A DNA stretch of 64,000 nt, from the NCBI GenBank assembly GCA_037379345.1, contig CM074513.1, positions 51,625,195 through 51,689,194 of the forward strand, written 5' to 3'. The position numbers were made by a program, and so were the translations under genes. Below are positions 13,880-44,000 of the stretch, piece after piece (the first letter of the stretch is position 1; every line of letters starts with the position of its first letter). The notes under the pieces were generated by a model, which was given only the letters and a program-made list of their open reading frames with translations, did not search any database and was not told the DNA's origin. This DNA is from Perna viridis (taxonomy: Eukaryota).

Positions 13880-14080
13880 AAAACAGAAGACGTCACAAAA
13901 GTATAAAGCACTGCAAAAGCTGGGAGTGATAGATCCGGATATTGAAGTGCTCAGTGAGGACATCGCGGCTGCATAGTACTATAATTCAAGTTGCTACTTC
14001 CGGTTGAATTCTGCAATTTCTGTCAGAACAGTAAACTATAGAGAAAGGACGAAGAAAATGTAGTTTTGCATTTGACCATA
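13880..14080 (+). promoter_or_regulatory. Homer proximal promoter / 5' UTR
   Basis: CRE-like AGACGTCA 13888-13895, TATAAAG 13902-13908, ETS site ACTTCCGGT 13996-14004; CpG-rich relative to the gene body. Confidence 0.55.
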
Positions 14081-14091
14081 ATGAGTCTTGG
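14081..14091 (+). CDS. HOMER: Homer coding exon 1 (MSLG, phase 2)
   Basis: ATG AGT CTT GG|gtaagt, a consensus donor. Joined to exon 2 it gives MSLGEQPIF, matching the conserved MGEQPIF start. Sits in a CpG-rich promoter-like region. Confidence 0.85.
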
Positions 14092-17000: not shown

Positions 17001-20000
17001 TTATTGCCCTTGAGAGGAGAAAAGAGAAGAAGAAATTTTTGCAGTTTTTATACAGTTATTATTGCAGAATCAACTGGGTTGTGGTAAGAAAAGACTCTTA
17101 CCGGGAGTTTTTTTACTGCCATTGAAAGGTAAAAATATCCATTATTGCAGTTTTTGGGCTTATATTTAGAACCATAGCAAATGAAGAGGTTAAGGCATTC
17201 CTATGTTATGATTGGCTAGATAACTGGATTGTTTCCATCAGATGAAGACAATTGAAGGTTCTGATTGGTTAGATGTCTGGTTTCTTGCTGTCAATTGAAG
17301 GCTTCTTGGTTAGATATTGTTAATTTCTGCTACTCTGAAATTAAAAGTTTTGATGCTTATATGCTTTACAGCCTGCCATGTGACTGTGTCTTTTCAGGTT
17401 TTTGTTAGGAATCCTATTTGCTCAGCAAATAAGCAACACTACCTTATGGTTTAGTTTAAAGGCCAATATGAACATCTATGAAATTGCTTCATCCCTAGAG
17501 TGACCTGCTTTATTGTGAGTGACTATGAAGCACTTTGAGATAAAGATTTTTAAATCAAATATTTTACAAAATTATTATACACACCTGTGTAATACATTCT
17601 TACATCAAATACTGTACCCACTTTTTCTTACATTGGTTATATATAAGTATGTTAATAGGTCTTAGTATACTACATCATTGAAGTTTTTGAAGGGTATTTG
17701 AACAACGTTTTGTATATGTTGAAACAAGATAATACCTCACTCCAATACAGTAAATTTATAGCATTAAATTGAAATGTTTACAGGTAATACAATATATTTC
17801 TAATTTATATAATAAATGGATGTTGACATAGAGTTGCTTCCCTTGTTATGTTATATACAATGTCGTTTTGATACTGTATTATACTGCAACATGTGATAGT
17901 TATTTGAACTGGAATCATTACTCTTATACTTTTATAGGATATGGTAGTTTATTTGAAATCAGAAATATTTTGCCATCGAGAGAATTTATCAAAATAACTG
18001 AAACTGGGTGCAAGCAGAAACACCATGATGAAAAGCATTGATTTTAACAGGTATTTAAAATTGTTTTTATGTTTTTGCAGGAAATGTTAAAATTCATCAA
18101 ATCGAATAAAACCAAAGAGATTTCTGAACATATGAGGTAGAATTTGTAGGCTTGTACTTATAAATTTTAATTTTCTTTGCTTATTGACTTACTGCTGATT
18201 TAGTTTTTGTTTTGCTAGTAATTCCAAGGGATTTCTTAGTATTTCCTTATTCTTGATTTTTTTATTATTTAAGATGGGAAGATGTTTGGTAGACTTCAGT
18301 TACTTTCATTTTTCAATACCTACAAAACGTACATGTAGCTTTTTAATAAAATAAAATCAGTACTTTTACAATATACTTTTCATGCTATTTGTCTTATACT
18401 GCATGTAGAATTTATGTGATTTAGGTCATATTTTCAGTGAGGAAATTTTTGTTTTTCAAAGGAAGATCTACGTGATTCACTAAACAACTGATAACCAAGC
18501 TCTTAAATTAATAGATTAGCAATGTTGACACAGTTACTAATGACATCAAAACAATGTGACACTAATATTCCAGTATAACAATGATACAATCAGATGAAGA
18601 AGACCTTCAATCTAAAACAATATATAACATATGTCTGTCTTTCAGTTTATCTGTCACAAAATTTATATCTTTCATAGCTCCTAAATCATTTTATGGATTT
18701 TTATGAAACTTGCAGGGAATGTCATTATGACATGCTATTTGAATTTTTGATTTGTATGAATTAATGTTTTCTAATAACACAACCTGTACTTCATCATTGG
18801 TTCTAATATAGAGGTATCAAATTTGTTCCTCCTTAGAGGATGATTGTAAGATACATTGTAATACCATTGTGCATCTGCTGTTTAAATATTGGATCCAGAT
18901 GAATTTTTGGTTTCTATTAGCATACATATAACATAATTATATGAATTGAATTGACTCAGGTAGAAAGTAGGGGTTACCATTTTGTATCTGCAATATGTAC
19001 ACTCCTAATATACTGACTGTATCTGGGAAACCATTGTGTACTGACTGTATCTGGGAAACCATTGTGTACTGACTGTATCTGGGAAACCATTGTGCACTGA
19101 CTGTATCTGGGAAACCATTGTGTACTGACTGTATCTGGGAAACCATTGTGCACTGACTGTATCTGGGAAACCATTGTGTACTGACAGTATCTGGGAAACC
19201 ATTGTGTACTGACTGTATCTGGGAAACCATTGTGTACTGACTGTATCTGGGAAACCATTGTGTACTGACTGTATCTGGGAAACCATTGTGCACTGACTGT
19301 ATCTGGGAAACCATTGTGCTTCTGTTGATTTTTTATCTGAATTAATTTTGTTACCAAACTTAAACTTACAACTAACTTAAATGAGATACCAACTGTTAGC
19401 TGCTAAATCGTAGCTCTTGATCTTTTTTTTTGATTTTGTGATCTGCAAAGCCGATAGCCACGAAACGAAGTGAAAATAGGTGCGAAAAAATCAAGGTCAC
19501 TGAAATTGCAATTTTTTTAACAGCCAAAATCGTAGCTCTAACGTTAAGAAAATACAAAAAAAATAGTTAGAGCTATGTTTCGCAGCTAACCAACTGTATA
19601 TCTTTAAATGTCTTATGTGAATTAATTTAAATTAATTTATATTCAATTTTTAGTAGTGTAGAATTTTAGAAAGTATTTGTTAACATACATGCCACAGGAG
19701 TGTGGGGCCTATTGTGAACATACATGCCGTAGGAGTGTGTGGTATACTTTTTGAGCAATACTTACAGTACTTCTTCTTTTATAACAAGGAATGGTCAACA
19801 CTTACTTAAGTGGAAGAAGATTTATAACTTAGACTAGTACTCAAGGTATCAGTCTTGTATTACATATTCCTGAGCGGGTGTACATCAAAATATGGAGGCT
19901 AAAAAATATAGTGCACTTCCTTTTTGCCATTTCCTGTTTTTGTTTCTTGGCAAATGACTATCATTATCAAACATCAGATATCAAGCTATGACACAAAAAA

Positions 20001-23000: not shown

Positions 23001-26000
23001 CATACATTATGCCAGAGCTTGCCAAAACTATGCAGACCTTTTGTATTGCGCTGGACTTCTGACAAGTAGGCTTTGGAACAGAGTTATGTTGCTACAAGAT
23101 TGAAGTAATTGCTAGAGAAGTTTTATGGTCATGAACTTGTGGATTGTTACACGTGTCCATCAGTGCCATGAAAAATGATTTGTTCACATGTCATAATTTT
23201 CTTTCCTCTGTCATCTACCTGGGACATGACTTTTTATGAGCAACTCGGCTGGTATTTCTATTATCAAACATTTCTTATATTTGTGTATTTTGTTTTTAAC
23301 TCAATGTAATACTCATCTGTCTCGATTTCATCTTCGATTCCCTCCATCTCAGTGCTGTGCAGAATTTGTCCAGACCTTTCAACGTAGATATCTTCTTGTC
23401 CACAGTGTTTAATAAACTTAGTCCGAATCAATAGTTTGTTCTTCAATAGCATCATCCAGTTTCTATAGTATTTTCGTCACAACTGCTCTGTTCCCTGCTC
23501 TCATGGATTTCTGTCATTGAACATCCATCCTCCATTTATCCTGGTCACGGTACCAATGTATTGTAGTCAAGACTTCGCATTTTGTCACTTTATGCAGGGT
23601 GTAAAAAGAAGCATTTTCCTTTACAAGATTCTAATTTTCCAGTGAGCATTGCATATATAAATTATGTCACAAGTAAAGCAGCTGTGCCGCAAATAGCAAC
23701 ATCAATATTTAGTGCAATTTACAACAGGATCAAAACAAGAATCCAGAATTTCCCCCCAAAGTGATATGCCTGTTTCCTGCTACCCTATATACCCTGTTTT
23801 TTGTGCCTACTCTAAACATTAAATGGCTGTTTTACCAACAACTGTTAAAGTCTATATTATTTTCATATAAACTCAATGTGAAATGCTTTTTAAAAAAATA
23901 AAAAAATTTCCCTACCTATCTACCTACCTCAGTACCCTATTTTTTTTTCTTGTTTGTAGTAGGAAACAAAAGATGTTGTTTTTTTTTACGTTATGGTGAT
24001 GCATACACTGCATATAATGTAGACTACTGACACAGATACTATTGCTCACATTCATTGTACAAAAAAGTCTTCATCATTATAAATTTAGTACAGTGTATTG
24101 GCTATGTGGGAATGTTGACCTGTAATGACAAGTAAAAGGACTATATTTATTGTTAAGTTTTAAAGTCAAGTGTAAATGGATAGTATTTATTTAAGTTTGT
24201 TGCCATATATTAGGATTGTTCATAATCATGTTTGTTTAGTTCTCAATAGTTTGGTTATGATTAGCTGTGAATGTATGTTTACTTATTATATCAATTCTAA
24301 TTGATTCTGTGACAAGGAATACAAACATTTGTTCTTTTATACAACAAAGAATAAAGATTTCATGTATGTTGTTGCAATATTCAAGTTTTGATAGTTTTCT
24401 TATCACTGGGGTGTCTTGACCTCTTGGACAAAAGGTCACATTTGATGTACTTTCTCCTTTGTTGTTTTCGTACATGTGCAGTTGTAGACATGTTGAAACT
24501 TAGTGTGGACAGATTTTTAATGTAATGATGCCGAGGACTGGTACCTGTTTAACTGATCTTTAAATGGATAACAGTTACATGATACTACCCCGATTAAAGT
24601 GAAGATAAACGACTTATTGAAGCTTATGTATTTGTCTGGGATGTTTTTATGTGTTCACAATGGTTCAGATGGCACCTCGTAAACTTCCGTAAGTTTATAA
24701 AAAATATTATTGTTATTGTTTAGGTCGTACAGGAATTATTTATAACATACAATATGTATAATGCTTTATGATGACTAAAACATCATTTCTAAAAAATAAT
24801 GCTGATGTGCCTTTTAAAAAATCCAGTGATTTGGAATTGTTTGACTTTTGTAGTGTTTTTAAATAAACAAAAAATGTTTTGAAAGTAACATATTCAGTAA
24901 GATGATTGTAATGACAAGACAAAAACAAATACATAGATTAATTAGAACATTTTAAATGACTATATGATCTTATCTAATTTGCATAGAATGTTTTTTAAAG
25001 AACATTAACATTGTGTCATCACCTGTATAAGCAGGGTCAAGACTATAAATTATAACCTAAGTTAAAACTATGTTGATCTTAAAGAAGATAGCTGGTCATT
25101 TAACCATTTATGTAATAACACTGGTATATTTATGGATTGTAAGAGTTTATAAACACATAAATGTGTTGACATAGTGCTTTTCTCACTAGAGTACCGCCTA
25201 AGTCTCTGTCTGATGTTTGGCTCATCACACATGGATAAGTGATGCTGTGTGAGAAGCTGTGAAGGATTGGTCACAATCAAAAAAATTATTGTACCGAAAT
25301 CCAATGGATGATATAGTTAAATTGCTGTACACAGAGCTTATTGTTGCATGTATATATACACACATATATACATTTTAAATGTGAAACCTAATAATGTATA
25401 TTTTCATCTAGAAGATTGTAAACTTGCCTCATTTTGGTCAGCTTAGTGGACTTTAGATAGTTTGGAATATTTTACACATTAATCTGATATAATGAAAGGA
25501 AAACATGAAATTGATCCTCACTGCATGGATAATCAACCTTGTTTAGAATTAAAGTTCCTCTCAATCACAGATAATGACATATACTGAGGATTTAATGTTC
25601 AACAAGAATCTTTATTCCCAAGAATACTTTGTTAAAGGTTAAATAGCTTGATAAAGGTCTGAATCAGATTTCAATGACAGGGTCCATAACAATGAATGAA
25701 CTGTTTTAGGAAGGTATTCACAGAAAACCAAGTGATTTGGATCAGTTGCTCATTTCTTTCAACTGTTTATTAATACCGTGGCAATAAAAGGGATTTCTTA
25801 TTCCGATATTGTTATATTTTAGAAGAACCCCATTTGAAACATTCCCTTTTAGGCTTTGTCTTTTATTATTTCTATTGGACGGATTATAATGTTCTTATAA
25901 AATCTTCATTTGGTTGGAAAAATGTAATTAAAGACTTGAAGCAGGGTATCTGTGGTCTTGCAATCAGCACACAGGAACTTGTACACCCCTCTCTTTAAAT

Positions 26001-29000
26001 TGAGAGCTTAGATTTCTTAGACTGACTGCTGATTTCTGTGTTATATTATAATAAGTTGTTTCACATTTGTTAGTTTCCCTATCCCTAAAAAGTTTCCATC
26101 TTATAATGGTATGGTGCTTTGTCATCACTAAGACATTTGTTTTGTTTTTTTTCTCCATTAATTTTAGTATTTGTATTAGTTGGTTGATGTTCCTAAAATT
26201 TTACGACAAGGTTCCAAACAACAACAGGAAAGTTAATTATGATCCTGACTATTTTGTAATTAGGGACCAGTTAGGGACAAAAACTAGCATTTCATAGTGT
26301 TTAACTACATAACTCCAGTAAAAGTATATGATGGGACAAAAATGAGCATTTTCCTGATTTTCCCATATTTTCCCCAACTGTACAGGTTTACCTCTGTGGT
26401 TGTATCAAGCTGTGCTCTGTGAAGCACTTAATTTACATGCTCTTATGACATAGCTTCTCATCAATAGAGCCACATGGAAACTAGATCATATTCAACATGG
26501 ATTTAATTGGTATGATTTTAAGAAATAATGAATCACTATGCTTACCATTGCCATAATTAGTTCTGGGAATTATATGTTGTATGTTGCCATGGAAACTTGA
26601 GTATGCAAGAAAATGCATTATTTTATAGAGAAGCGTATGTTTATATAATTGTTACAATCAGGCAGAGATCAATCACAAAGAGGCCTTTAATCAGTTGTTT
26701 TATCTTTTTCTTGAATTCCCTCATCTACAATTTATTTATAAATTAGAAAAAAAGATAAAATTAGTGAAGAATGTAGTAAAATGATTATGTTTGTAGGAGT
26801 TTGTTATATAAACAAGGGATTTCTATTTCTGGTTTGCGGACATTAATGATCAATGACTATACTATTTTAGTTCTTTTTATTTCATTTGTAATTGAGTTCA
26901 ACATAGTATCATACATAGCCATCTTCTCTTTAAGATATCACCACTCATAGAAGCTATTTTTTGACTGTATTCTGATGTTGTAGTACTACTCTTCGGACTG
27001 AAAAAATGGCATATTTCTTAATTTAACTGAGGACTCCTTGTTGTAAAATGTATGGTCTGACCTAACCCATAGTTTGTCTAAGGAAGTGTGTAAGTTACTG
27101 CAGCAAGTCTATCAGATTTTCAGATTTTATTATATACGCTCAGACACATACATAAATGTGTTACATGAGGTCAATCAGTAATACATAAAAAAAAAACACA
27201 CAGAAATGAGCAATAATAAATACAGAGATATATACAGATACTTATGGAGAGCGAAATGTGATAAATCTATCATAGCATTGCAGATATTGTTTTAATGAAC
27301 ACAGAAAGTTTTTTTTAACACATTTGAATTGCAAAAAGAGAGTAAATCACCCATTTTGTTATGATTTGGATACTCATAATAATATCTTGCCAAATACTAT
27401 AGTCTTAGATTTTTAACAGCGACATTTTCACAAACAAAAAATATGTGGAATTCAACATTCTCGTTGCCAAAAGAGCATATTCTCTTAGGTTTTGGAATGT
27501 TATACCACCTTCCTTTTTGAATTGGTAAATGGAGATTAGAAGTTCGTAATTTTGTGATCCAAATCCTGTAATACTTAGGTAATTTGACTATATATGGTTT
27601 TCAATACCGAAGGATGTCTTGAAAAGCGAGTAGAATTTAGTCAATTTAGGGGTCACCCGTCCATCTCTGTCCATTCATCCGTTTGTGCCACTCTGTGTAC
27701 ATTTCTTGTAAGTGCAACTCCTTCTAAATCACTCAAGGCTATTATGATAAAATTTATTGGAAGGCTGGGATACATTGATGTGCATGAAGAAATATAAGAG
27801 TTGTACATGTTCAAACCTTGTAGCACAACTACTTTGAAACTACTATTGATAAAATTATGTAGGAAAGTTAAGCATCATAATAAGATGTACATGAACGGGT
27901 ATAATTACTGTTGGAGGACTTTAATGTGAAGCAGGGGTATTTTGTTTGTCAGCTTGATCACAGTATTTCTATCTATTAGCCCCAACAGTTATAAGGCCAA
28001 TTAGAATAAATACTAGATTTAGTTCCCCTGCTACTTTACCCTTGAAAATCCTCCTGCCCATTTTTTTCAAAACCAAACTGGTTATCTAACAAAAAATGGG
28101 GCAAAGTACATGATGACACTTGTAATGTAATCTATATTTAAAGCTGACAATAGCAGGGATGTAAAAATTATCTCCCTTTTCTGCCCATGACTGAAAAATC
28201 TTGTAATGGTTCCAATAAAGACTCTATGCTTATTTTATACAACTAGAAAATATTTGAATGTATTAAAAAAGCACCCTAAGGCATAGTGACAAAGTATTGT
28301 CCACTTTAAATATGGTTTTCACAAGAAGGAGTTAATTAAAGAACAGTTTATCTATGGAAGTTGCTTCTTGCAAACATTCATGTACATATAAGAATCCTTT
28401 TGCCCACCCAGTCTTGTTTTTTTTAGGGTGGATGAAAATATAGCAATTAAATTTAGCTTGCCATATCAAATGTGTTTTCTTTTTATATATTCTGATAAAG
28501 TTTCCTAAATTTTCACCTGCACAGCCTGTATCTTTCTTTCTTGGCACAAATTAAGCACTTCACAGACCTATTATCATATAAGAGATAGTCTTTTAGGCAA
28601 ACCAATTAGAGAATATAAAATAGTTTAAATATTGTCACTTGATGAAAAAGACCTAGGCTTTCCATTAGATATGCTGTGTAATTTACTCAGATTGTATCTT
28701 TGTGTAGAAAGGTTTGTTAAATTGATTGAGACTTTTATTAGCTGATGTGTTCCAAATTAAAGTTTATAGGTATCAATCAGCTAACAAGTTAATTAATTAG
28801 TGATAAGTCATTATTAGACCCACTTAAATGTAACATTAGCATGAGTTATCTGTTAACCACCTGTATCTGATTAAAGTACAGATTCTTTTAAGTTTAATTT
28901 TGTGTAGAGGCAAGAATGACTTCAGAAAAGGGAGTGGTTAGATGGTGCTTTTGCTTAGGATTTTAATATGTTGTGCATTGTAATCCTGGTGCAGATATGA

Positions 29001-32000
29001 ACTATCAAATGGTAATAGTCTTTACATGAAAATACTTTATTTTGATACTGAGACAATGATGAACACAGAAAAAGGCTTCTGTTGTGAAAATGTATTCATT
29101 GATTCCAAAATAAGATATTAATGACATTCATGAGAGGATTACATGCCTTCAACTGATCCAACTACAATAGTCACAAACACTAAACAGATGAATTCATCAG
29201 ATGTGTACATCCAGAACAGATGGTATTTTAATATCAAACTAGAATAGATGTTAGATTGGAAGCCAGGTACCTTCAGATATTGATATTGTTGGTGTGTAAG
29301 CAAAAGTGATAGTAAAATTATGTAACTAGGAATTCTTAGCATTATCTTGTAGATGTAACATTTAGTGCAGATCCATGGCAGCTATGCTGTTAAATAGAAA
29401 TGTTTTGTTTAATTAATTGGAGTCTGGTGGAGATAACTGCCAAAGTCTGCTTCATTAACTGTGTGACAGCAGTAACCACAGGTGCACATGCTTTCTTGGT
29501 GTACACTATTTAATTGAGGACTTCATTGAGGCGAAGGATCTTTATGGGTGAATAAATAAATTGGCATTACTTTCCTTGTGTGAGCACCATACCGTGAATA
29601 CAGCTAACACACATACCATCTCCTCTAAGCAGCCATTGGATCTTTTATTCATTGATTGGATGGATAATATATTTTATGGATTCAAGATGAGCACAGTGTT
29701 CTTTGTTGATAGCAGGAAGGTATAGGATACTACTGTCCTTTTACATGTCCAATCCTCATTATCAGAGCATAATGTCTAGCACTGAAGGAATTAATGAGTA
29801 AGCTATGGGATATAGAAATCAATGACAATTAGCAACAGACACTGACGATGTTTTGATAGGAGATAGTGCATCCCATCTTCTTCCCTTTCTCTACAGGATA
29901 CCATGTTTTTCTGTCTGTAATAAGGTGTTTATTCTCTTGTAATGAATTGTAGAACCACAGGTCAAAGTATTCATGTATGTATTTGATTAGGAATCTACTG
30001 TTCCTATGAAGGCTGGATAGCAAAATGTTGTAAACTTCTTATTCACTTATGAATATTGGATAAGCCAAAGCTTTATTTGTGATTTTATATTAGATTTATC
30101 GTAAAATGTCTTGGTTGTCCTCATTTTCACCAATGGATGTCCGGAAGAGACCACCTACTCCAGAGTTTCCGGTTTCTCCATCAGATTTTGATGAACAGGA
30201 AATTGAGGCTAAGAAAAACAACACAATGACAATGCCTAGATCACCAAGCAAGTCTCATAGAGCAGGCATATTTCGTGGGAGGTCGGCTACTCCAGATCGT
30301 GGTAGAGCGCCAAGTCCTGTAACCATTCCAAGTATACCTAGCCAGCAGAATGCTGCTGCAGTTCCCCCATCACCCAGGGCTGGAAGGATGGTAAAAGTAT
30401 TACCAGAAAGTCCTCAGTTAGTCAAATTGCCTGGACGACCTCCAACTCCTGATGAGTCTGTTGTCCAAGACCTTTCGTGGTTACAACACTTTGTTATATG
30501 GAATGAAAGGCAAGTTTCTGGCATGGAGTGTGTATAAAGCATGCATGTATTGCTTTGATCTGTCCTGAAAAGTGTTGATACATGTATCCATGGATATAAA
30601 ACACATTTTTAACAATGCAAGGCATAAATTATGTTTTTATGACTGTACCAATGATATATGCATCTGTCTTCAGAAAAAAATTTCTTGTGCTTGTTTGTTT
30701 TTGTTGCTTTGCTGGTGTTATTTTAACTGTAAAAGAAATTCATTCCACAAATGGTTAAATGCATATGTATACCTCTGAACTTTAGGATTCTAATACACAT
30801 ACTTAGTATTACTTTTTATATGGAAATAAGGGGCTAAAAACAAACATTTTTTCTTGTATGAACCATTTCTGCAATTCAGTAAAAGTGTATGAGTTGTACT
30901 TACCGTAAGTTTGAAAATAATGTTGAAATCAGTCTTTATGACTACAAAAATAATAATGGTATGGCCCTGTTGTTATGGTCATTGGTATTGCTTGGCTCCT
31001 TAGACACTTTGGTTTACAGACGATAATTCTTTTGATTTTAATGACCTTGTAACACAAGATGCCATTCCACAAAAGGGGATTAGCTTTGAGGGTTTTGACT
31101 TGAAAATTAAAGAATTATTGACTAAAAAGGGGACACCAATAAGCATTTTCCTGGTGTCAGACTACAACTTGGGTGTAAGTGAATAAATCTCCATGAAATC
31201 ATATCACAATGATACCACAAAAGAAAGACTTGAATTAATTTTTATGTTTTTAAGGGATTATGGACCAAAAAGGGTCCAGAAACAGGCATTTTTCTGATGT
31301 CCAGACAATTACTTGACTAAAAGTGTATGGATCTCTGAAATTATAATACAATGCCTTACCAAAAACTGGAAGGTTGGGTTTGGCTTTTAGGTTTGTGATA
31401 TGTAAGTGGCCTAAAGGGGTCCAGAAACAAGCATATATGATTTCTGGACAATTACTTGAATAAAAATGTATGGATGGTGTGTATGTTTGAAATTTATTTA
31501 CAAGTTGATATACCTCAAAAGGATGACTGGGTTGGTTTTGGAAGTGTTACCTTGAAACATTTAGGAATATGGGGCCAAAAAATGGCCAGTGAGAAACATT
31601 TTATTGGTTTTTGGTTTTAACTTTTGTAAAAGTGTTTTGATCTCTATGAAAAAGTATTACAAGGTAACTTAGGAAAGTTTTGATAGATTTCAAGGCTTTT
31701 AAGAATGAGGGGCAAACAAAATAGGTCATTAATAAGTAATTTTCTTTAACTCTGGATACATTTCTTTATTGCAAATTTTAAGTTCTTTGACATTTTTCAT
31801 TCTTGTCAGAAGCTCATACTGTGTCAAAAATTGGATAACAATCCAAAAATGAAGTTTGAATGTTGTGTCCATACTGATCTGGACTGTACAGGGGTTGACC
31901 TCTGCAGTGGTATCAAACTTTGCCCTTTTTGCACAATAATTTATTTAATAGATGTGCAAATTTCTTTGAAACTTTTATTACAATGTTTCAATTTGGTTTG

Positions 32001-35000
32001 ATTTGAAAAAAATTACTTTTGGTAATAAAACTGGAACATTACACAAAACTAAAATGTCATCAAAATTGTTTCAGGTAAGATTCATACCTGATTCCTTCAG
32101 CTCATTTCCCTTTACAATGTTTTGAACTTTTGAAATATAGTAAAATTACTGAATTTTACACAATTTTATTAATTTGCTCTTTGAATGCAAGTTTATCTAG
32201 GAATAAAAAGGAATATAGATATTAAAGGAGTCTTAAGTACAAATTATGATATCAGTTACCTTCAGTATTTAAAATAAGCACAAATTTCACTAACATCAAT
32301 TTCTTTGTTAAATTTTAACATCAAGGCTTAAACCGAATTATATTTATATATATAGCAAAATATTTATTACAATATAATTTCTCTCTAAGAATTCAATCAT
32401 CTAAATAGGAAGGTTTGGCATGATCTGTAGATGTGCATGGATGAGTATTATTGTTGTCAGAGTACTCCATAGGGAGATAATCCAACTTGAAGGGTTAAAA
32501 TCTTGTAGTAAGCACAACTCTTCCTATACGGCTCAAGGGGTTTTGATGAAACTTTATAGAAAGGTTGGGTATCATATGAAGATGTACATTAAGGAATATA
32601 ACAATTATAATGAGAATGGATATGGTGAATATTTCTAGGAGACAACAACCTTACGGGGTTGAAAAAATATCAGATAAAAGCCACCCATATATGAGGATAC
32701 CCTCACACCAAAAGGCAGGCTTCCCTGTGGTGTAAGGGTTTGTCTGGAGACTCTAAAGGAAGGAAATTCAGCTGAAAGGTTTTGATTGCACCAAACAAGT
32801 GCAACTCCTTCTTGACCATACAAGGTTTTTTTTATGAAATTTAGTAGTTAGGGCTTCATATGTTTTTGTCAGGGGAATGTCCAACTTCAGAGTCTGTACA
32901 TATTTAAAACTTTATTTGAAGTGGGAGCATTCTGTTTGTGAGCTTGTTCACAGCATTTCTAGTTTTATTTGTAAGTACTCTTTCCAGTCATAATTAATGG
33001 AGAATAGGAACTGCTCTCTTCAGAACAATTTCTGAACTAGAAGAAAGTCTATTGTTATATTTGCTGTTGACTTTGATCAGTTATTTATAAGATGAAAATC
33101 TTAGTTGAATACTTATTACAGAAAATATACATATCAGTTTACATATCTGTGTCATTGTCATTTAAAATACTGTTTCATTATCAAACATAATCTTAAAATG
33201 CTACAAGTTTTTGCAGGATGCTTCTAATTATTAAATAATGTCTGGATCTTCTGTTATGGTAACATTTTATCAAGAAATTATAATGATTTACTTTTCTTAA
33301 TGTAGAAATGTAATTATTCTTTGACCAATAAGTTAATTGTAGTTTTTCTTGTAGTTTATGTCCACTTTTCACTCCTATTTATTATTAGCTCACCTTGCCC
33401 AATGGGCAGGGCCAGGTGAGCTTTTGCCATCACTTAGCTTTCTAGGTTGTCATTGTCATTAACAATTTTTCAAAACTTTTCTCCTCTGATGGTATTATTG
33501 CCGCTTTTCATGCCCCTGCAACGATAACTTGGGGCATATTGTTTTACCCCTGTCAGTCCGTCCGTAATTCCGTCCATAATTCTGTCCATCCCATAAGTTT
33601 TCTGCACTTTTTTGAAAATCCTTGAAGATATTGAACTGATTTTTTGTATGTGAGTCTTTCATGATTAGTTATAGAATGAGTTAGTTTCGTTCTGTTACTC
33701 TGAGTTTTACCAAAAATATGGGCCCTAGTCTTTAAAAATTTCATGGAAATAACAGTTTTCCACACTTTTTTTGTAAATCCTTGAAGATATTGAACTGCTT
33801 TTTGGTATGTGAGTCTGTCATGATTAGTTACAAATCGAGTATAAGTTTCATTATTCTACGCTGAGTTTTACCAAAATAATGGGCCCTGCACTTCAAAAAT
33901 TGTATTGAAATAATAGTTTTTCTTTTTTGTTTTGTAAATGCTTGAAGATATTTGACTGGTTTTTGGTATGTGAGTCTGATATGATTAGTTACAGATTGAG
34001 TTTAAGTTTCGTTCAGCTATGCTGAGTTTTACTCAAAACCACATGCGGGGGCATCATTTTTGTCTCACAGACACAATAACACATCTGACAAAGTGCTTTT
34101 TACAATTATGAGTTATGATATATAGCTGTATGAATGTCAAATGTGGGGGCATCACTTTATCTAGTTTGACATTTGTTTTGCTATTTTTTATATTATTATG
34201 TTAAAAAAAAACCTCTTTCTTTGACACTACTGGACCAATTAGAACCAAACTTGGTTTGAATGTTCTTAGGGTATAATGCCTAGAACTGATATAGGGATTT
34301 TTTTTATCTGTATGTAGACAAGCATGAATAAATAGGGGCAGATATTTTGCATATCTCCAAAACCATTAGTTTTAGCCAAGTTCTGTGTTCAGCATGATGA
34401 GATCTTTTTGTGGTCAAATTTTTTTGAAAATCTGTTAACCTCTGTTGGAGTTAAAGCCCGTTTTGGACAATTTTTGTGCTACTTTTGATGTTATTGCTTT
34501 CAAAATCTTCTCCTTTGACACTACTGTACCAATTAGAATCAAAATTGAATGTTCCTTAGGTTATTTTGCCTAGAACTGATGTTGGGATTTGTGATCTGTA
34601 GGCAGACATGGCTGCTGTTACCATAAAATAGAACAAAGGGGTCAGACAGCAGGTTTTCCCATCTCCAAAACTGTAAAATTTAGCCATTTCTGACATGGGT
34701 AAAAAATGTTTAGAGTGATCTTTGGTCAACTTTTTGTGAAAATCTGATTACTCATGTTGGAGTAATTGTCCTTTTGGGACATAATTTTGCTATTTTTAAT
34801 GTTATTACTTTCAAAAATCATTTTCTCTGAATCTACTGGACAAAATTCAGTGGGAATTATCTTGCACAAAAGAATATTGGGATTTTTGATCTGTGAAAAA
34901 ACATGGCCACTGTTACTAAAAATAGAACATTGAGGTCAGACAGTTTTTGGCATGTATTTCCTAAACTGTTAAGTTTACCCAGTTTAAGACAAGGGATAAA

Positions 35001-38000
35001 ATTTTCAGCATGAATAGAACTTTCTATGGTAAAATTTTGGGGAAAACCTGTGAACCCATGTTTGAACTTATGCCATCTTTGGATGTTTTTTCTTTGGCTG
35101 TTTAGTTTTATTTTATTCAAAAATCTTCTTCTGTGATACAAACTACTGGATCAAATTCAATGAAACTGTAAATGCATTCCTACATTTTGATATTGAAGTT
35201 TTATCTCTTCGGTTTACAAGAATCATTGTAATGAAGTCAACAGTTCTAAATCAAGTTAAAAATAGATGTTATCAATTGAAATGAAGTGAAAAACTTATAA
35301 TCTGGCTTTGCTTCAATCTTTACCATGGCTTGAAGATGTAAGCATAATGATTTTTATAAAATGAAGTGCAGTTGATTTTACACATTGTTACCCTCAGGAT
35401 TGGAACATTGCATATTTTATACAAATATTTAGTTACCAGAAATTGATGTACATTTATTAAAGCATGAATGACAATTTCATTTCAATTATTTGTTTCTATT
35501 TATTCTTCTAATTGTGCCTATGTATTAACCACATTTCATTCTTCTGATTTTTCACTTCATCTTTGTTATTCTGTTGAAGGTATGTGATGTGATACTTGAA
35601 CTTCTTAATTATGAAATTCACTTTTAATTGACTTGTTATATGACCTTTTGACCTACTTACAGCTGCTTACTATGGTGAAAAAGGTTGAATGATAAATATT
35701 ATGTATGAATCATTAATGATTTGATTAATTTGATGAGAGTGATTGTCCCACAGAGGAGGACTGGGTGATGGATTGAGATGTACTATGAATTGCTATAGTT
35801 TTATCAGTTATTTCATTATCATCTCAAACTTATAGCAAATTGTCCAGGATGAGGTGGAAAAGAAAATACAAATAGTGGGATAACTATGACTTAACTATGC
35901 CTGTGTTGTTTGGACAAATTTAGGTTGCAATAAATTTTGTACCTTCAAGTTTTCTGTTAAGAAATAGGTTTACTTTCTTACCTATAAGACCTGGAAATTA
36001 CCTTTCAATTATGTTTACCTCTTACCCAGATCTGATAACATTGTTTGTTTACATTTCAATTCAAATTCTATTTAAAGTCATAAATGTTTTCATTAAAATC
36101 TGTTTGATGTAAAATTGACCTTAGCTTGAGGGGTCAGAAAGGTCGAACAAGACACCATAAAACAGTTATATGATTGACAGAGAGTGACAAAGATTATCAA
36201 TCAGAAGGACCTGAACATTAATGTCTTGACTTTCAGGGGACATAATCTGGGATCTGCTCTCTTCAAACAGTTTTGATTGTGATAAGCAGATTAGTATAAG
36301 GAGATTGTTGATAATTCATTGAGGAATTTCATTGCTGACCAATTGTTTATGTTTATGTGACCTAGTTAGGGAAAGAAAATGCCAGAAGTAATTAGCAGGT
36401 AGGAAACCTTTGATGACCTCCAGGTAATTCATGTCATGTTCATCAAATTTTTTTAAGTAATTAGTAAGTAATATCTGTGGTCAAGTCAAGTGTCAGGCAT
36501 AAATAACCTCAAAATAATAATTTTTCACCTTTTCATTATGATTTAGGACCTGGTCTTGTAGATTTTTGTCATGTTTGTGTGTATAAGGAAAGACAGTGTG
36601 TAGTAGTATGTTATTACCATATAAACATGACAATGTTGTATTCTATGGAGACTCCTGAATAAAGGATTTGACATAAAAGCAAAAAAACATGAAACTCTGA
36701 AACCAGATAAACTCAATTGTGCAATAGCAAATTAGAGAACACGGTTTTATCAGACAACTAGATAAGGTTTAGACATTACTGAAGGAAAGTGAATCAAGTC
36801 TCTGATATCTGACAAAACTCAAAACTCCTAAGGAGACTGTATGTATTGATGGAAAATGTCGCATCTAGTAGCTGGTAGTTCTCTTGATTCCACCAGTTTT
36901 GCTGGAGTAGATTACACAGATGATGATGTTTTTGAAGAGCACTTGATAGTGAGGAGAGAGTAAGAAGAAGTTCTCTGTTGTTTTAGAAATGGTTTCTCTT
37001 TGAAGGGGGTTTACAAGTGATTGATTATTATACTGTTTTACTGACTTGTTAATTGTGTTGGAGAATAATATGTTAAGTGAGGAGGCTGGGTAAATGAGTT
37101 GATATTTTGTGAGCAACTGAAGGATTTACCACTGTTCTCTGGCATTCTTTTGTCTCTCAGGATAATCACTCATAATTCCTTGTTCTCAGTGTCAAGTCTT
37201 ATACATGTAAATACATGTTTAAGTTTCTTAGTAGGAGAGGATCTTTTTCAAAGAAATGGTCTGTACAATTTCAATGTTTGTTGTATATTAACATATCAAT
37301 TTCTAACACTGGAGAATTTTTTACATAAATTTGCATGTCTTTTTTATTTTAACCAAAAGCTATGCATTTTCAAATATTTATGTTACAATTTATGTAATTT
37401 GAATTCATTATTTTGCCTGAAAACATTTTAAACAAATAAAGATGAGTAACATTTCAGAAGTGTTGATTCTATCTCGAAACAGGAATGCTGTTCGAGATAT
37501 CACTGAGCATCAATTCAAAGGTGTGTTATGCATGACATCAAGAAGAACTTAGTGTGTGTACAATAATTGCATCCTTATTATAAAAACATTTGCTGTTAAA
37601 TGCTTTTTGTGCATAATTTGTACGGTATGTAGTTCGGTTGTTATCTATGAAGCATACCATTTATAGACTTTTTGCTGTGGTATCCTAGACAAATACATGT
37701 ATTTACAAACAATTTTTTTATTTCATCATAGTTAGCTGAAGGGTAGCTGTCAAAAGCTAACTCTTTCTTCTGCTGCTACTTCATGATGAAATGTTGAAAG
37801 TCCTTTACATCATAACAAGTTTTACTTTGAAGCTAAATCATGATATAAAATTAGAAATGATTGAATATGGGAATGGGTCCTTTTGGTAATCTGTGTTTGG
37901 TCAAAAATCAAAGTTGAAAATAATTAAAAATGATATGATATGAGACATGCTTTATACACTGCCATCCTATTATCTTGAATTTCAGTCCTACAGCTACTCA

Positions 38001-41000
38001 CATGCAGTTAACAAGAAGTCTCTTTAGAACAAAAAACACTTCATTTCTTGCTAGTTATCACCCAGTTTATGGTAGTTGCTGAAAAAAGCATCTCTAATAA
38101 TAACATTACATTTTTATATTTTCAGGGAGCAGCCCATCTTTACTACAAAAGCCCATGTGTTCCAGATAGACCCTGATACTAAAAAGAACTGGATCCCAGC
38201 CAGTAAAACTGCAGTCAGTGTGTCTTACTACTATGACTCGACAAGAAACACCTACAGAATTATCAGTGTTGATGGATCTAAGGTTGGTTACACATAATAT
38301 AACAATAAATACCTACATAAAAAGTCACGCTGAAAACTGAGTAGTATTACATTGAATGTTTGGAAAACTTCGATGAAGTAAAACTAAATTAATTCCAGGA
38401 AGTATTCATAGAACACACCAATCTCATGGAAAAAAGTTCTACCTTGACAGAATCTGAGTTGGATTTTTCATTTTTTTGTCATCTTTATGTAATTGCCTTA
38501 TTATCTGACATTCAAGGCTGTTCATTAGGAAACCAGTTAACCTGTCTGTTACCTATCATCCCCTCTACTGTCTAATCCTGAGGACAAATTAGGCAATATA
38601 AGGCCAAAATGAAAATCTGAACAGAGCTATGGATGGGTTACATTTACTTTGATGAAAAATATTCACCTCTACATCTTCAAGCTCTGTTGAGGATTATTAA
38701 AAATAAATTTTTGGCTAGAAAAAGTACTAAAATTAACTGCTCTCATAGAAAGATTCTGTTTCTTTTTTTCTAAAGTATGTCAAATGTAATTTTTGAAAAG
38801 GTTTAATGTTGAAAATTTTATTACTAGGTTCCAAACCACATTAGGAATATTGGTGTTTAGATTTTTGGGTTTATGGACTCAACCATTTTGAATTTTGGAC
38901 CAAAAAGGGCCAAAAAAGCATTTCATTGCATTTAATTATATAACTCCAGTAAAAACATATGGATGTTGATATATTCTATATCACAAATGTCAGGCTGGGA
39001 TTGATTTTGGAGGTTAATGCTTGCACCGTTTAAGAATGAGGGGCCAAAAGGGAGCCATACAAGCCTATTCCTGATATTAAGAGAATAACTTGTCTTTTGA
39101 TCTTGTTAAAATTGTAACACAGGGTGTTAAACCACCATAGCAAGGCTGGGATTTCAACCAATTAGGAATTATGGCAAAAAATGAGGCTTAAATAAGTATT
39201 TTCCTGGTGCCCAAACAATAATTATATAAGAGTATAGTGAATGAATCTCTTAAATTGTACTGCAAGGTGCCATACCTAAAAAAGGACTGGAATTAGGGGC
39301 CAAATATAGACAAAAAAACACGAACATTTCTGATTTCTGGATGATTACTTGAGTAGAAGGGATGGATCTTTTTGAAATTCTACAAAATACAGTCCGCCTG
39401 AAGGAAGGATGGGATTGATTTTTGGAAGTCGTGACTGGAACCATTGAGGAATAAGGGCCAAAAAGGGTCAAATTCTTATCATGGTGTGTCCATAACTGCC
39501 CCAACTGTTCATGGTTCAACCTCAGTGGTTATATCAAGTCATTTTTATTATATAATGGTGAATTGGTAATACATGTAGTATTGATTCATCAGATTTGACT
39601 ATGTAATGCTAGTAAGTTTGTCATAAGAATGAGTTGCCAAACTATTACAAAAACTTGAATGTTAAAATGGTAAAAATAAGGAGATATAATTAACTAGAGA
39701 GCATAAATTTACAGTGTTCTGGTAGATTAGTAATTGGTTAATTAAGTATAGATTTTTTTTGGCCATGCAAACTTAGAACAATGGAACACTGTGATACTGT
39801 CTATTATACTGTATGCAAAGCTATGTCATTTCCAGCTGTTCTGTCTGTACTGGTAATCAAAAGATAGTATTAAAACAGCTCTCCGGTCCATAAAAGTTAT
39901 AATAATTAGAATTAGTTAGCGGTTACTGTCTCATTTTGGCTGTTTATTTAATTAATATGGCATAAAAAATAACTGTAAAAAGAGAAGGTATTTTCTGCTT
40001 GTATGACAACATGAGATATATACTGTATTATGGTTTTATTGCCACCTACCAAACTGTCAATAAGATATATAGGTATAGGTTGAATAGGACTTACAAAACC
40101 TTATAATTAATTTGATATTAAAACTAGGTATTGAATAGTAAATTTGTAATTCAAAATTGATTCTGGAACTATCATTTTCTATATAAAAACAATGGAGATA
40201 CATCACATATGAATAAAAACATCTAATTAAGAAAAAAAATTAAACTTTGCCTTGTCTGTAAACGGCTTGACTGAATATTTAATTCTGTATGTGTAGCATC
40301 ATTCTGATACTCTAGTCACATGATAAAATCAGTTCAGAATCTGTCTGTTTGCTGTCACTACCATCATTAATGTCTGTTTTTATAATGTATTTATTTATAT
40401 GCAGACATTCAATACACCTCAACAGACAACTATATAATTTAATTACTTCTGTATTAAAATTATTGGCCTTTAGTGATATACAGATAAAATATTCACACAT
40501 TAGCAATATACACATGAAATGCTAACAAACTAGCAAAATACATATGAAATGTTAACACACAAGCAATATACACATGAAATGTTACCAGACTAGCAGTATA
40601 CACATGAAATGTTAACACACAAGCAATATACACATGAAATGTTAACACACAAGCAATATACACATGAAATGTTACCAGACTAGCAGTATACACATGAAAT
40701 GTTAACACACTAGCAATATACACATGAAATGTTAACACACAAGCAATATACACATGAAATGTTAACAGACTAGCAGTATACACATGAAATGTTAACACAC
40801 TAGCAAAATACACATGAAATGTTAACACACTAGCAATATAAAGATGAAGTGAAACACACTAAACCTTATTATTGTGTAATTTTTTTTACAATTTCTTATG
40901 AAGTGTTGATAGTCGAGCACTGATTTGTAATTAGTACTGATGGCACTTGATGCTTATGAGCATTTTATATTTTGTATACATGTATTTTGATGAATTTTAT

Positions 41001-44000
41001 CAAAGAAAGTATCTTGGCTGTTGTGAACATTTATTGCACTGTACAAGTCACATACATAGTTACATACTGTATTAAGTGATAATTTTCACAACCTTTTATA
41101 GGCCATCATCAATAGTGTTATTACCCCAGGGATGACCTTTACCAAAACATCTCAGAAGTTCGGACAGTGGTCAGATCCTAGAGCTAATACTGTATATGGT
41201 CTTGGGTTCACATCAGAAGCAGACCTTGCTAAGGTAAGAACTACTTAGATATACATACCATTCTATGGTCTGTGGTTTACAACCAAAGTGGACTCAGGCA
41301 AGGTAAGAATCACCTAGATATACAAACCATCCAATAGTCTAGGTTTCACATCAGAAGCAGACCTTGCTTAGATAAGAACTACCTAGATATACATACCATC
41401 CTATGGTCTTGGTTTCACATCAAAAGTGGACTCGGGCAAGGTAAGAACTACTTAGATTTGCATACCATCCTATGGTCTATGGTTAAAAAAAATATGATTT
41501 TTCTGATAGGTTTATTGAGTTTTTTCTTTTATCTAACTCGAATACTATTTATTTAAAGTAGAACATAAAATAATGTCTGAAATTTAATTGTATGTTAGAA
41601 CGGAAGATTTTATATTTTGATTCTGACTTACTGATATATTTATTTCTTGGCGATATTATTATTTTTTATGAATGAAGATGCATCAGTTTTGTGTATTATG
41701 AGCTGAATAGATAATATAAATAGAATATAACCACAAACCAACATATATACCTGATAGTTCTCTATAGTAACAATACATGTGAAGATATTACTAATTAAGA
41801 TACCAGCAAGACATTTGATACTATTTTCATTTTATACACCAGGAGTGATTTCATTTTGTTTTAGATGTTTTTATTACTTCCTTCTGAAGTGTCTATATAA
41901 TGTGAAATTGATCAGGAAATTATATAGATTTGCACCTGTCAGTCTGAGTAAAATGTTAAATATTTTATGTGATTTATAGACATGCAGCATCAGTTTTGTA
42001 GTTGCTTGGTCTTTACAATAATTGAAACTGTACATTTATTTTTAGAATGTATTTTTTTTTCTTCCAAGAGAGATAATTTTGTAAAGCAACAGACATCCTA
42101 AATTTCTCAGAGTAGGCATAAGTTTTTTATACATAGAAAAAAACTAGCATACGAAATAAATCTGAATTTTGAACTTAAATCTTTTTGTGTCTCTTGGAAT
42201 CATAGAATTAAAAAATAAATGCATTGTATATATATCAACAGTTTATAGAGAAATTCAAGGAGATAAAAGACTTGACCAGACAACAAGTTGCTCAGCAACA
42301 AGTTCAACAGACAACTCAGGTTAATGGCAATGTTGTTGATGAGAATCACACCGCTAGCCAATCTCCTCCGCAGCCTTCCCAAGGTGCACGGCAGATCCTG
42401 CATCATCGAAGCTCTAGTCTTTCTGCTGTTCAGGTTTGTTGCTTCAAGCATGCTCTAACTAAAAACCCTAACAATGTTGAGATGATCCTGTTAAAATAAA
42501 GCAATATTAATCTTTGTTTGGATTGACATTCCAAAGTTTATCATTTTAGATACAAAAGGAATTGATACTAGACATTCTTTACAAGCAAGCATATTGTACC
42601 TTAACTTCACAAACAAACTCAAAATTTTTAACTGTTAACATTTGAAGTTATTATATCAGATTGTCTCTAAAGCCTTAAATCTTTTTCATCTGTCCTTTCT
42701 GCCTTACACAAAATAATAGCAGCAACTATCAACAACAATATGATATATAGACTGTAAACATCAAATTTGACCATCTTGACAGAGAGTATCACCCTGCCAG
42801 GTTTGCTTTGAAACTGGTGATACATTTCTTCATGGACTTATGTTGTTATATCATCTGTTGTTATGTTTTGGAGTATTATTTCATATCTCTATAGTAAGAG
42901 TTTTTATTAAATCATAACAAAAGTTTCTGTGTTTATGTTTATATTCTTGTCTGAAAAGAAAAAAAAACATTCTACAGTTATCACATTTCAAGGGAGGCAT
43001 CTCAACAATGTGTATTTTTTGTTTTGTTTATAATGATCATATCAACAGCTGTTTTTATGCCTAAGATGCTTTTATCATGGCTATTGATTTTGTTTGGTTT
43101 ATATGTGTCTGATCTTAAAATAAAATCTTTTGAAGATAATGTACTATCTTGAAGATTTATAAAGGTAGCTAATTCAACCCCTATCTAAATGTAATTGCTA
43201 TTACTGTTATATACATACAGATCTGTACCGAAAATTGAATTGTAATGGAAGGATATTTTTCTATCCTTAATTTAATGTTTTATTAGTTACATCATTACAT
43301 GCTGTTGGTCTTCTCTTGATACTATCAGTCTCACCAGTGCTTCTAAAGTGTTCAAACTTACCTGCATGTTAGGTAATCATTCAAAGCCTTATAGGAGTAC
43401 TGATACATGTACTACATATACATGATTTTTGCAGACTGATAGCCCAGAGGCAACACCCACACCAGAAACATCAGAAAAATCATCTGATGACAAAGTATTA
43501 CGACATTATCTTTTTTTTTTCTTTTTTTTTTGTTTCTATAAAGTACTCTCACTCTGTGATTGCTGTGACTGAATATGATCACAAAAGCTCAACATACTCA
43601 GAAACTTTACTCATGGAGGTATTGTATTTATCAGTTGTATTTACCAATAGTTGTAAATCTTCGTAAACTATCTTTAAAAATCTCTGATTTTATTCAGATG
43701 AACTAAAAGTGAACAACAAAAGAATCTTTACAGTATTTAGTCAAAAAACTTCAAAATAGTGCTGAAAAAGGGATTATCTATGGGTAAAGTTTCTTTGAGT
43801 AAGCTTTTATGAGTTAAGATTTTTATTGTTACATGCCTTTTTGCATAGAAATTCATTGACAGATCCAGAATCAGATTATACTTGTAATGAACTAGATCTT
43901 TGTTATAAGTTATTTCAGTACCACAAAAATTTTGTGGTCCTGTAATGGTATGGCCCTGCTTTTGTCTTTGTCATCCTATAATGAAATGGCCTTGCTTTTT

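Follow-up and report, generated by a model that had tools for sequence, protein, structure and literature searches.

Homer proteins are core postsynaptic and calcium-signalling scaffolds, and their EVH1 domain is normally treated as a free N-terminus. The isoform diversity of vertebrate Homer lies at the C-terminus, where the coiled coil is lost (Homer1a versus the long forms). As far as the searchable literature goes, a Homer protein with a conserved arm ahead of the EVH1 domain has not been described; our literature search for N-terminally extended invertebrate Homer proteins found nothing relevant, and the paper on the Aplysia synaptic transcriptome does no more than count Homer genes. Here we analyse a 64,000-nt stretch of contig CM074513.1 (GenBank assembly GCA_037379345.1), which we call the window and in whose coordinates all positions are given. 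It holds a Homer gene on the forward strand, and positions 30106-30509 (+) very probably form the coding part of exon 1b, an alternative first exon of that gene that gives rise to a long isoform. This exon, which had been proposed from the letters of the window in an earlier note, is joined to the EVH1-coding sequence through an intron with a GC donor. GC-AG sites make up ∼0.8% of the sites in protein-coding genes, are enriched in first introns and have been linked to alternative splicing (PMC7242645).

Exon 1b and its splice junction

The EVH1-coding part of the gene is readily recognised. Exon 2 (38126-38282, +), which follows the acceptor tattttcag|G, encodes the start of the EVH1 domain (Pfam WH1, 1.8e-14), and its best matches in PDB are all EVH1 domains of Homer 1, 2 or 3 (E 4e-26 to 6e-23). 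Its alignment to solved Homer EVH1 chains covers their residues 3-54 (E 4e-26); these chains start 2-10 residues before the start point of exon 2. The next EVH1-coding exon, at 41099-41236 (+), matches WH1 profile positions 60-103. Judged by these matches, the gene is a Homer-type EVH1 scaffold.

An open reading frame (ORF) of 143 aa occupies positions 30106-30537 (+); it begins with an ATG, and its frame is closed upstream by an in-frame TAG at 30091, 15 nt before that ATG. Just as the earlier note had described it, the frame runs through ...TGG AAT GAA AG, which ends at 30509, into the GC donor GCAAGT (30510-30515, +), giving AG|GCAAGT at the exon end. The coding part of exon 1b comprises 134 codons plus the two bases AG of a split Arg codon. 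The first base of exon 2 (cag|G GAG CAG CCC ATC, at 38126) completes this codon as AGG, and the phase 2 join that had been proposed (...WNE-R-EQPIF) indeed keeps the frame at 30509/38126 and adds 135 residues ahead of the EVH1 domain. The 7,616 nt between the two exons (30510-38125, +) have the sequence features of a U2-type GC-AG intron (AG|GCAAGT ... tattttcag|G) and are removed from RNA, as set out below. We dropped the length of the ORF as evidence, since comparable stop-free stretches (160, 157, 157 and 147 aa) occur elsewhere in the window; the other long ORFs of the window have no Pfam match above the cut-off. Because the length of the 1b ORF is unexceptional, the case for it rests on RNA and on conservation.

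Exon 1b is contained in 20 public runs from nine studies, of which 14 are small contig sets that were guessed to be RNA (36-105 million letters, versus a genome of 723 Mb). We aligned the contigs of four of these runs (X1, X3, X4 and X5, from four studies) to positions 26000-31999 of the window. One contig in each run carries exon 1b: the matches to the genome begin at 29068 in X1 (contig of 3,928 nt), at 30070 in X3 (956 nt), at 29498 in X4 (1,040 nt) and at 29972 in X5 (685 nt), and all four contigs leave the genome at 30510. The match extends one base beyond 30509 because 30510 and 38126 are both G. In X1 and X3, the 30 letters after the break are those of exon 2 from 38127 on, past its ambiguous first G, and thus the junction from 30509 to 38126, for which the earlier note had suggested looking in RNA, is present. 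Past the junction, the X1 contig carries another 2,485 nt, a length that could accommodate a complete long form. Positions 30511-30892 are covered by no contig in the four runs; neither read-through to the stop at 30537 nor transcripts that end after it, the outcome that had been named as fatal to the proposal, are seen among these contigs.

Two considerations bear on the nature of these contigs. First, the contig sets cover the 6-kb stretch in patches, and this patchy cover, together with the exon join itself, indicates that they derive from RNA. Second, the 1b peptide is encoded at only one locus in its own genome, and a processed copy (retrocopy) as the source of the joined form is thereby ruled out. 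The exon 1b words are nearly absent from four other runs, X21-X23 (from the same studies as X1 and X10) and X24 (labelled as the same species), which suggests that expression of the 1b transcript is restricted by tissue or condition.

Conservation of the exon and of its GC donor

A HMMER (phmmer) pass over 1.8 billion representative proteins returned six significant relatives of the 1b peptide and nothing else, and a word search with a profile raised the total to twelve proteins of 59-258 aa. These homologues fall into nine kinds with 33-84% identity, and 37 residues are invariant in the nine sequences. The arm is 82-84% identical to that of Mytilus galloprovincialis, which suggests, from sequence, that the window comes from another mytilid mussel; the arm is probably confined to bivalves. 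A scan of JGI metagenome contigs with the 1b alignment gave 191 pattern matches, 0 of which were confirmed. Three of the proteins in the library (P0003, P0004 and P0006) are spurious. They derive from L005 (JGI 3300042712) and L006/L007 (3300042710), from a related mussel, in which pieces of the same exon occur in both orientations within 1 kb. The odd N-termini of L005-L007 (MFCEFWFGTVGMVTGL) were considered as alternative exons and rejected as artefacts of palindromic or chimeric assemblies.

All of the homologues are gene-caller ORFs that read through the donor: each carries ...DLSWL(Q/E)Hxx(V/I/L)Wxx-R-Q, and the sequences diverge completely thereafter. The ‘RQ’ is the translation of AG|G CAA, where a GT donor would give a stop, and its presence in every read-through ORF therefore requires a GC donor. 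Indeed, the DNA shows an identical AG|GCAAG in eight kinds, namely the window, L008 (M. galloprovincialis), L009/L005, L001, L002, L003, L015 and L019. A change from C to T at +2 would be silent and would strengthen the donor. Because no such change is found in the eight kinds, we infer selection for a weak donor, with the reservation that the independence of the lineages is limited. That the donor stays GC over a divergence that saturates synonymous sites is a further sign of selection keeping the site weak.

The pattern of substitution is that of a coding exon. Comparisons among the four most complete sequences give a pN of 0.32-0.40 against a saturated pS of 0.71-0.80, and dN/dS is ∼0.2 where it can be computed, so that by this sequence measure exon 1b is under purifying selection. 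Nucleotide similarity to two other mytilids extends from ∼5 nt before the ATG to 5 nt after the donor. The ATG (MSW), the frame and the purine at -3 are conserved, and the indels between species keep the frame. The position of the exon is conserved as well. In M. galloprovincialis (L008) and in a second mytilid contig (L009) it precedes the EVH1 exon on one and the same strand, separated from it by orthologous introns of 9,750 and 6,413 nt, respectively, and on the P0015 contig of a distant species (37% identity) a WH1-matching ORF lies ∼3.9 kb downstream of 1b, also on the same strand. Of the comparative checks that the earlier note had proposed, dN/dS below 1 and conservation of the donor came out in favour of its exon, and so did its place relative to the Homer gene.

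The deposited annotation of M. galloprovincialis treats the orthologous exon differently. P0012, a 171-aa protein named ‘homer’, includes this exon and runs on past the donor (...WNERQEICL...); immediately downstream, on the same strand of UYJE01005184.1, the annotation places a second gene, the 430-aa WH1 gene. The exon is the same as that in the window, but in P0012 it is a separate gene, whereas RNA of the window species joins it to EVH1 exon 2. The earlier note had anticipated that annotation restricted to GT donors would go wrong here, and exon 1b is a concrete case in which a GT-only gene model detaches a real coding exon as an orphan gene in a deposited annotation.

The 171-aa model implies that the 143-aa ORF, with its stop at 30537, might be an independent small gene nested in a Homer intron. 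The ORF is intact and has a stop of its own, and read-through ORFs have been called in every species, one of them deposited under the name ‘homer’. If this were such a gene, transcripts and conservation would be expected to include its own 3′ end and stop. Instead, conservation stops at the donor and the sequence after ‘RQ’ is wholly different between species, while no contig in the four runs passes 30510, the donor is the exact point at which all 1b contigs part from the genome, and those that were read beyond it continue into exon 2. We consider a nested independent gene barely credible.

The 5′ side of exon 1b

The stretch immediately upstream of the coding part (29068-30105, +) is colinear with exon 1b in the contigs, and could represent a 5′ leader or a signal from pre-mRNA. 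The earlier note had placed an acceptor at 30094, joined to a donor at 29719. This part of the proposal does not hold: 30094 is crossed without a break in all four contigs, and the joint from 29719 to 30094 was not found among the contigs of the four runs on 26000-31999. Because the contigs cross 30094 unspliced, exon 1b appears to behave as a first exon.

The colinear stretch contains 31 upstream ATGs, the last of them at 30049, and its similarity to other mytilids is restricted to 43 nt (29195-29237). The contig that reaches least far upstream begins at 30070, which is 36 nt ahead of the ATG and already past the last of the upstream ATGs. A transcript start near the ATG, with a short leader from ∼29970-30070, thus appears more plausible than a long leader, and the signal further upstream would then be unspliced RNA from a distal promoter.

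The upstream ATGs also bear on whether exon 1b codes for protein at all. It could be transcribed and spliced without being productively coding, as a regulatory or noise 5′ exon with a leader rich in upstream ATGs; the 31 ATGs would fit such an exon, and non-coding transcripts often have a GC-AG first intron (PMC7242645). We regard this as highly improbable given that conservation spans exactly the ORF and not the leader, that the ATG with its context and the reading frame are maintained in the manner described above, and that pN is well under the saturated pS. Moreover, the contig that starts only 36 nt before the ATG begins past the last upstream ATG.

We therefore return to exon 1b as a coding first exon of Homer, against which several points weigh. 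The runs carry only a guessed label (‘RNA? (a guess)’), and contigs show presence only, not transcript starts, ends, abundance or rare variants. The letters after the break were read in X1 and X3 only, of the four runs. A true 1-kb leader with 31 upstream ATGs would make translation from 30106 inefficient. Finally, the protein libraries yielded no full-length spliced protein (within a query-length window of 0.55-1.75x), and the search of representatives likewise gave no long match, although the latter is weak evidence as isoforms may cluster under another representative.

The most probable course of events is the following. Transcripts that start upstream of 30070, presumably from a promoter of their own, are spliced at AG|GCAAGT (30509/30510), a weak donor that is conserved, and joined across 7,616 nt to the usual exon 2 acceptor at 38126. 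Translation from the ATG at 30106 would then yield a long Homer isoform with 135 predicted-disordered residues directly before the EVH1 domain.

Composition, predicted disorder and proline-directed sites of the arm

The arm encoded by exon 1b is rich in Pro (16%), Ser (13%) and Arg (8%), and none of our searches relates it to a known domain. It belongs to no Pfam family, a PDB profile search gave no relative (only a chance Pro-rich match to testis GAPDH, E 0.03), and the best score in the ESM Atlas, 0.81, is within the range of shuffled proteins. AlphaFold2, run on the alignment of nine sequences, returned a mean pLDDT of 56 and a pTM of 0.14, with a weak helix only at residues 115-127; the arm is thus predicted to be disordered.

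The arm is enriched for proline-directed sites. The earlier note had counted nine S/T-P sites, six of them Px[S/T]P, along with RPPTP(E/D) twice, PPTPEF and PPSPR, and each of these counts is exact. In 20,000 shuffles of the peptide, the mean was 3.8 for S/T-P sites (9 observed, P = 0.003) and 0.6 for Px[S/T]P (6 observed, P<5e-5). Five of the S/T-P sites are invariant in the nine sequences: T18, in Rx[PA]PTP[ED]FP; T62, in RGRxxTPDR; S89, in PPSPR; S102, in PxSP; and T/S114, in the terminal block R[PA][PA][TS]P[DE][ED]..x.DLSWL[QE]H..xW. The PxSP context is always present at S89 and S102, and the corresponding PxTP/PxSP type is found at T18 in 7/9 and at T/S114 in 6/9 sequences, with Ala at -2 in the remainder. 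The strongly conserved C-terminal block of the arm abuts the EVH1 domain.

The arm therefore has an enriched and conserved cluster of proline-directed sites within a region predicted to be disordered, and phosphorylation of these sites is itself a prediction. Of the functions considered for the arm, the one that fits best would be a phospho-regulated platform of linear motifs, used for docking or gating, a role that we put forward tentatively and hold to be somewhat less probable than its opposite.

Relation of the arm to EVH1 ligands

The Pro-rich motifs of the arm recall known ligands of the EVH1 domain, and the earlier note had read them as EVH1-ligand-like. A proteome-wide screen defined the motif bound by Homer1 EVH1 as [PIALV]Pxx[FWY], in which the Pro at position 1 and the position-4 aromatic are required and an [LF]PP flank is beneficial (PMC11237882). 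The phospho-regulated Homer ligand TPPSPF of group I mGluRs is Pro-rich and contains S/T-P, and PPSPR and PPTPEF of the arm are superficially alike; unlike TPPSPF, however, the arm motifs do not place Pro1 and a position-4 aromatic in register. In PPTPEF the Phe is one residue too far, and PPSPR has no aromatic residue. Furthermore, the PP of the first motif (in PPTP) is AP in two species. Neither PPxxF nor [PIALV]Pxx[FWY] is matched anywhere in the arm of the window, and even the relaxed pattern xPxx[FWY] occurs once (SPSDF) versus 1.3 times expected from shuffles. The ligand-like character thus fails at the essential positions, and the arm is not enriched for such motifs.

A related possibility is that the arm acts as a tethered pseudo-ligand of its own or of a neighbour's EVH1 domain, resulting in auto-inhibition or self-crosslinking that would be switched by phosphorylation. 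The arm is attached directly to EVH1, and an invariant F21-P22 follows the first RPPTP. The best near-match, FPVSPSDF (residues 21-28), which was not among the motifs named in the earlier note, has Pro1 and Phe4 of xPxxF as well as an F-P flank that resembles the Ena/VASP-like flank known to enhance Homer1 binding. Apart from the mytilids, only one species carries it. In four other sequences VPVSY or PPP[GS]Y, which fits [PIALV]Pxx[FWY], stands elsewhere, and one species has no such motif, so that no candidate is conserved in position across the nine sequences. Furthermore, ∼97% of motif matches in a human peptide library showed no binding enrichment, even under avid conditions (PMC11237882), and the arm in the window falls short of even a match. 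We conclude that a tethered pseudo-ligand is distinctly unlikely.

Other first exons of the gene and conserved blocks in its introns

Exon 1b appears to be one of several alternative starts of this Homer gene. A distal first exon, 1a, is suggested by its phase and by a strong GT donor (ATG AGT CTT GG|gtaagt); its putative coding part at 14081-14091 (+) would give MSLG-EQPIF. If it is placed here, intron 1 is 24,034 nt long, in accord with the 24 kb given in the earlier note. A CRE-like GACGTCA followed 8 nt later by TATAAA lies at 13890-13915 (+), ∼170-180 nt before the 1a ATG, and from its sequence looks like a classical inducible promoter.

Exon 1c (36856-36960, +) was found through colinear conserved blocks and is conserved in L008 and L009. 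It consists of 34 codons plus GA, with the donor GA|gtaaga in phase 2, and encodes a 35-aa acidic tag (MSHLVAG...). The annotated 430-aa WH1 gene (Homer) of M. galloprovincialis starts at exon 1c. The earlier note had taken Homer proteins to start directly at EVH1, which does not apply in mytilids, where the 35 aa of 1c also precede exon 2. At least three 5′ coding exons that share one phase are available to the gene, namely 1b (135 aa), 1c (35 aa) and the putative 1a (4 aa), and the choice of promoter among them would set the N-terminus.

Conservation is also found in non-coding parts of the locus. Two blocks, 36961-37265 (+), just downstream of 1c, and 36344-36483 (+), ∼400 nt upstream of it, are 70-84% identical to two other mytilids and may be promoter, untranslated region or a longer form of the exon. 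Within the long intron, four blocks (18066-18139, 24257-24348, 24573-24695 and 29195-29237, all +) are colinear with M. galloprovincialis and 75-86% identical to it; untranslated exons and regulatory elements are both possible identities for them. Short matches at 26309-26433, 31294-31317 and 31849-31871 are to high-depth contigs that continue elsewhere, in several runs, and are probably fragments of expressed repeats inside the intron.

Comparison with known GC-AG introns and Homer isoforms

The 1b intron resembles other U2-type GC-AG introns in that it combines a GC donor with consensus flanks and a polypyrimidine-AG acceptor, occupies the position of a first intron and lies in an alternatively spliced gene. 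Relative to the usual GC-AG introns it is mechanistically ordinary; what sets it apart is that the C at +2 has been kept in eight kinds.

A broader model would join these features into N-terminal regulation of bivalve Homer. Three promoters would give an EVH1 domain that is bare (1a), acidic-tagged (1c) or phospho-armed (1b), with the weak GC donor making the long form conditional, and the phosphorylated arm, through its conserved helix-prone block beside EVH1, would gate ligands or recruit partners of the kinase, Pin1 or 14-3-3 type. We consider this full scheme rather unlikely as it stands. If it were true, bivalves would have arrived, by another route, at a functional equivalent of the activity-dependent Homer1a switch.

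A conserved arm under selection, with five invariant proline-directed sites, makes the EVH1 end itself a site of isoform regulation in one animal lineage. Vertebrate Homer1, Homer2 and Homer3 belong to the same family as the gene in the window, and in both cases a single gene gives isoforms that differ in their scaffolding properties. Vertebrate Homer, however, varies at the C-terminus, whereas the Homer of the window varies at the N-terminus, by 135, 35 or an inferred 4 aa, through the use of alternative first exons.

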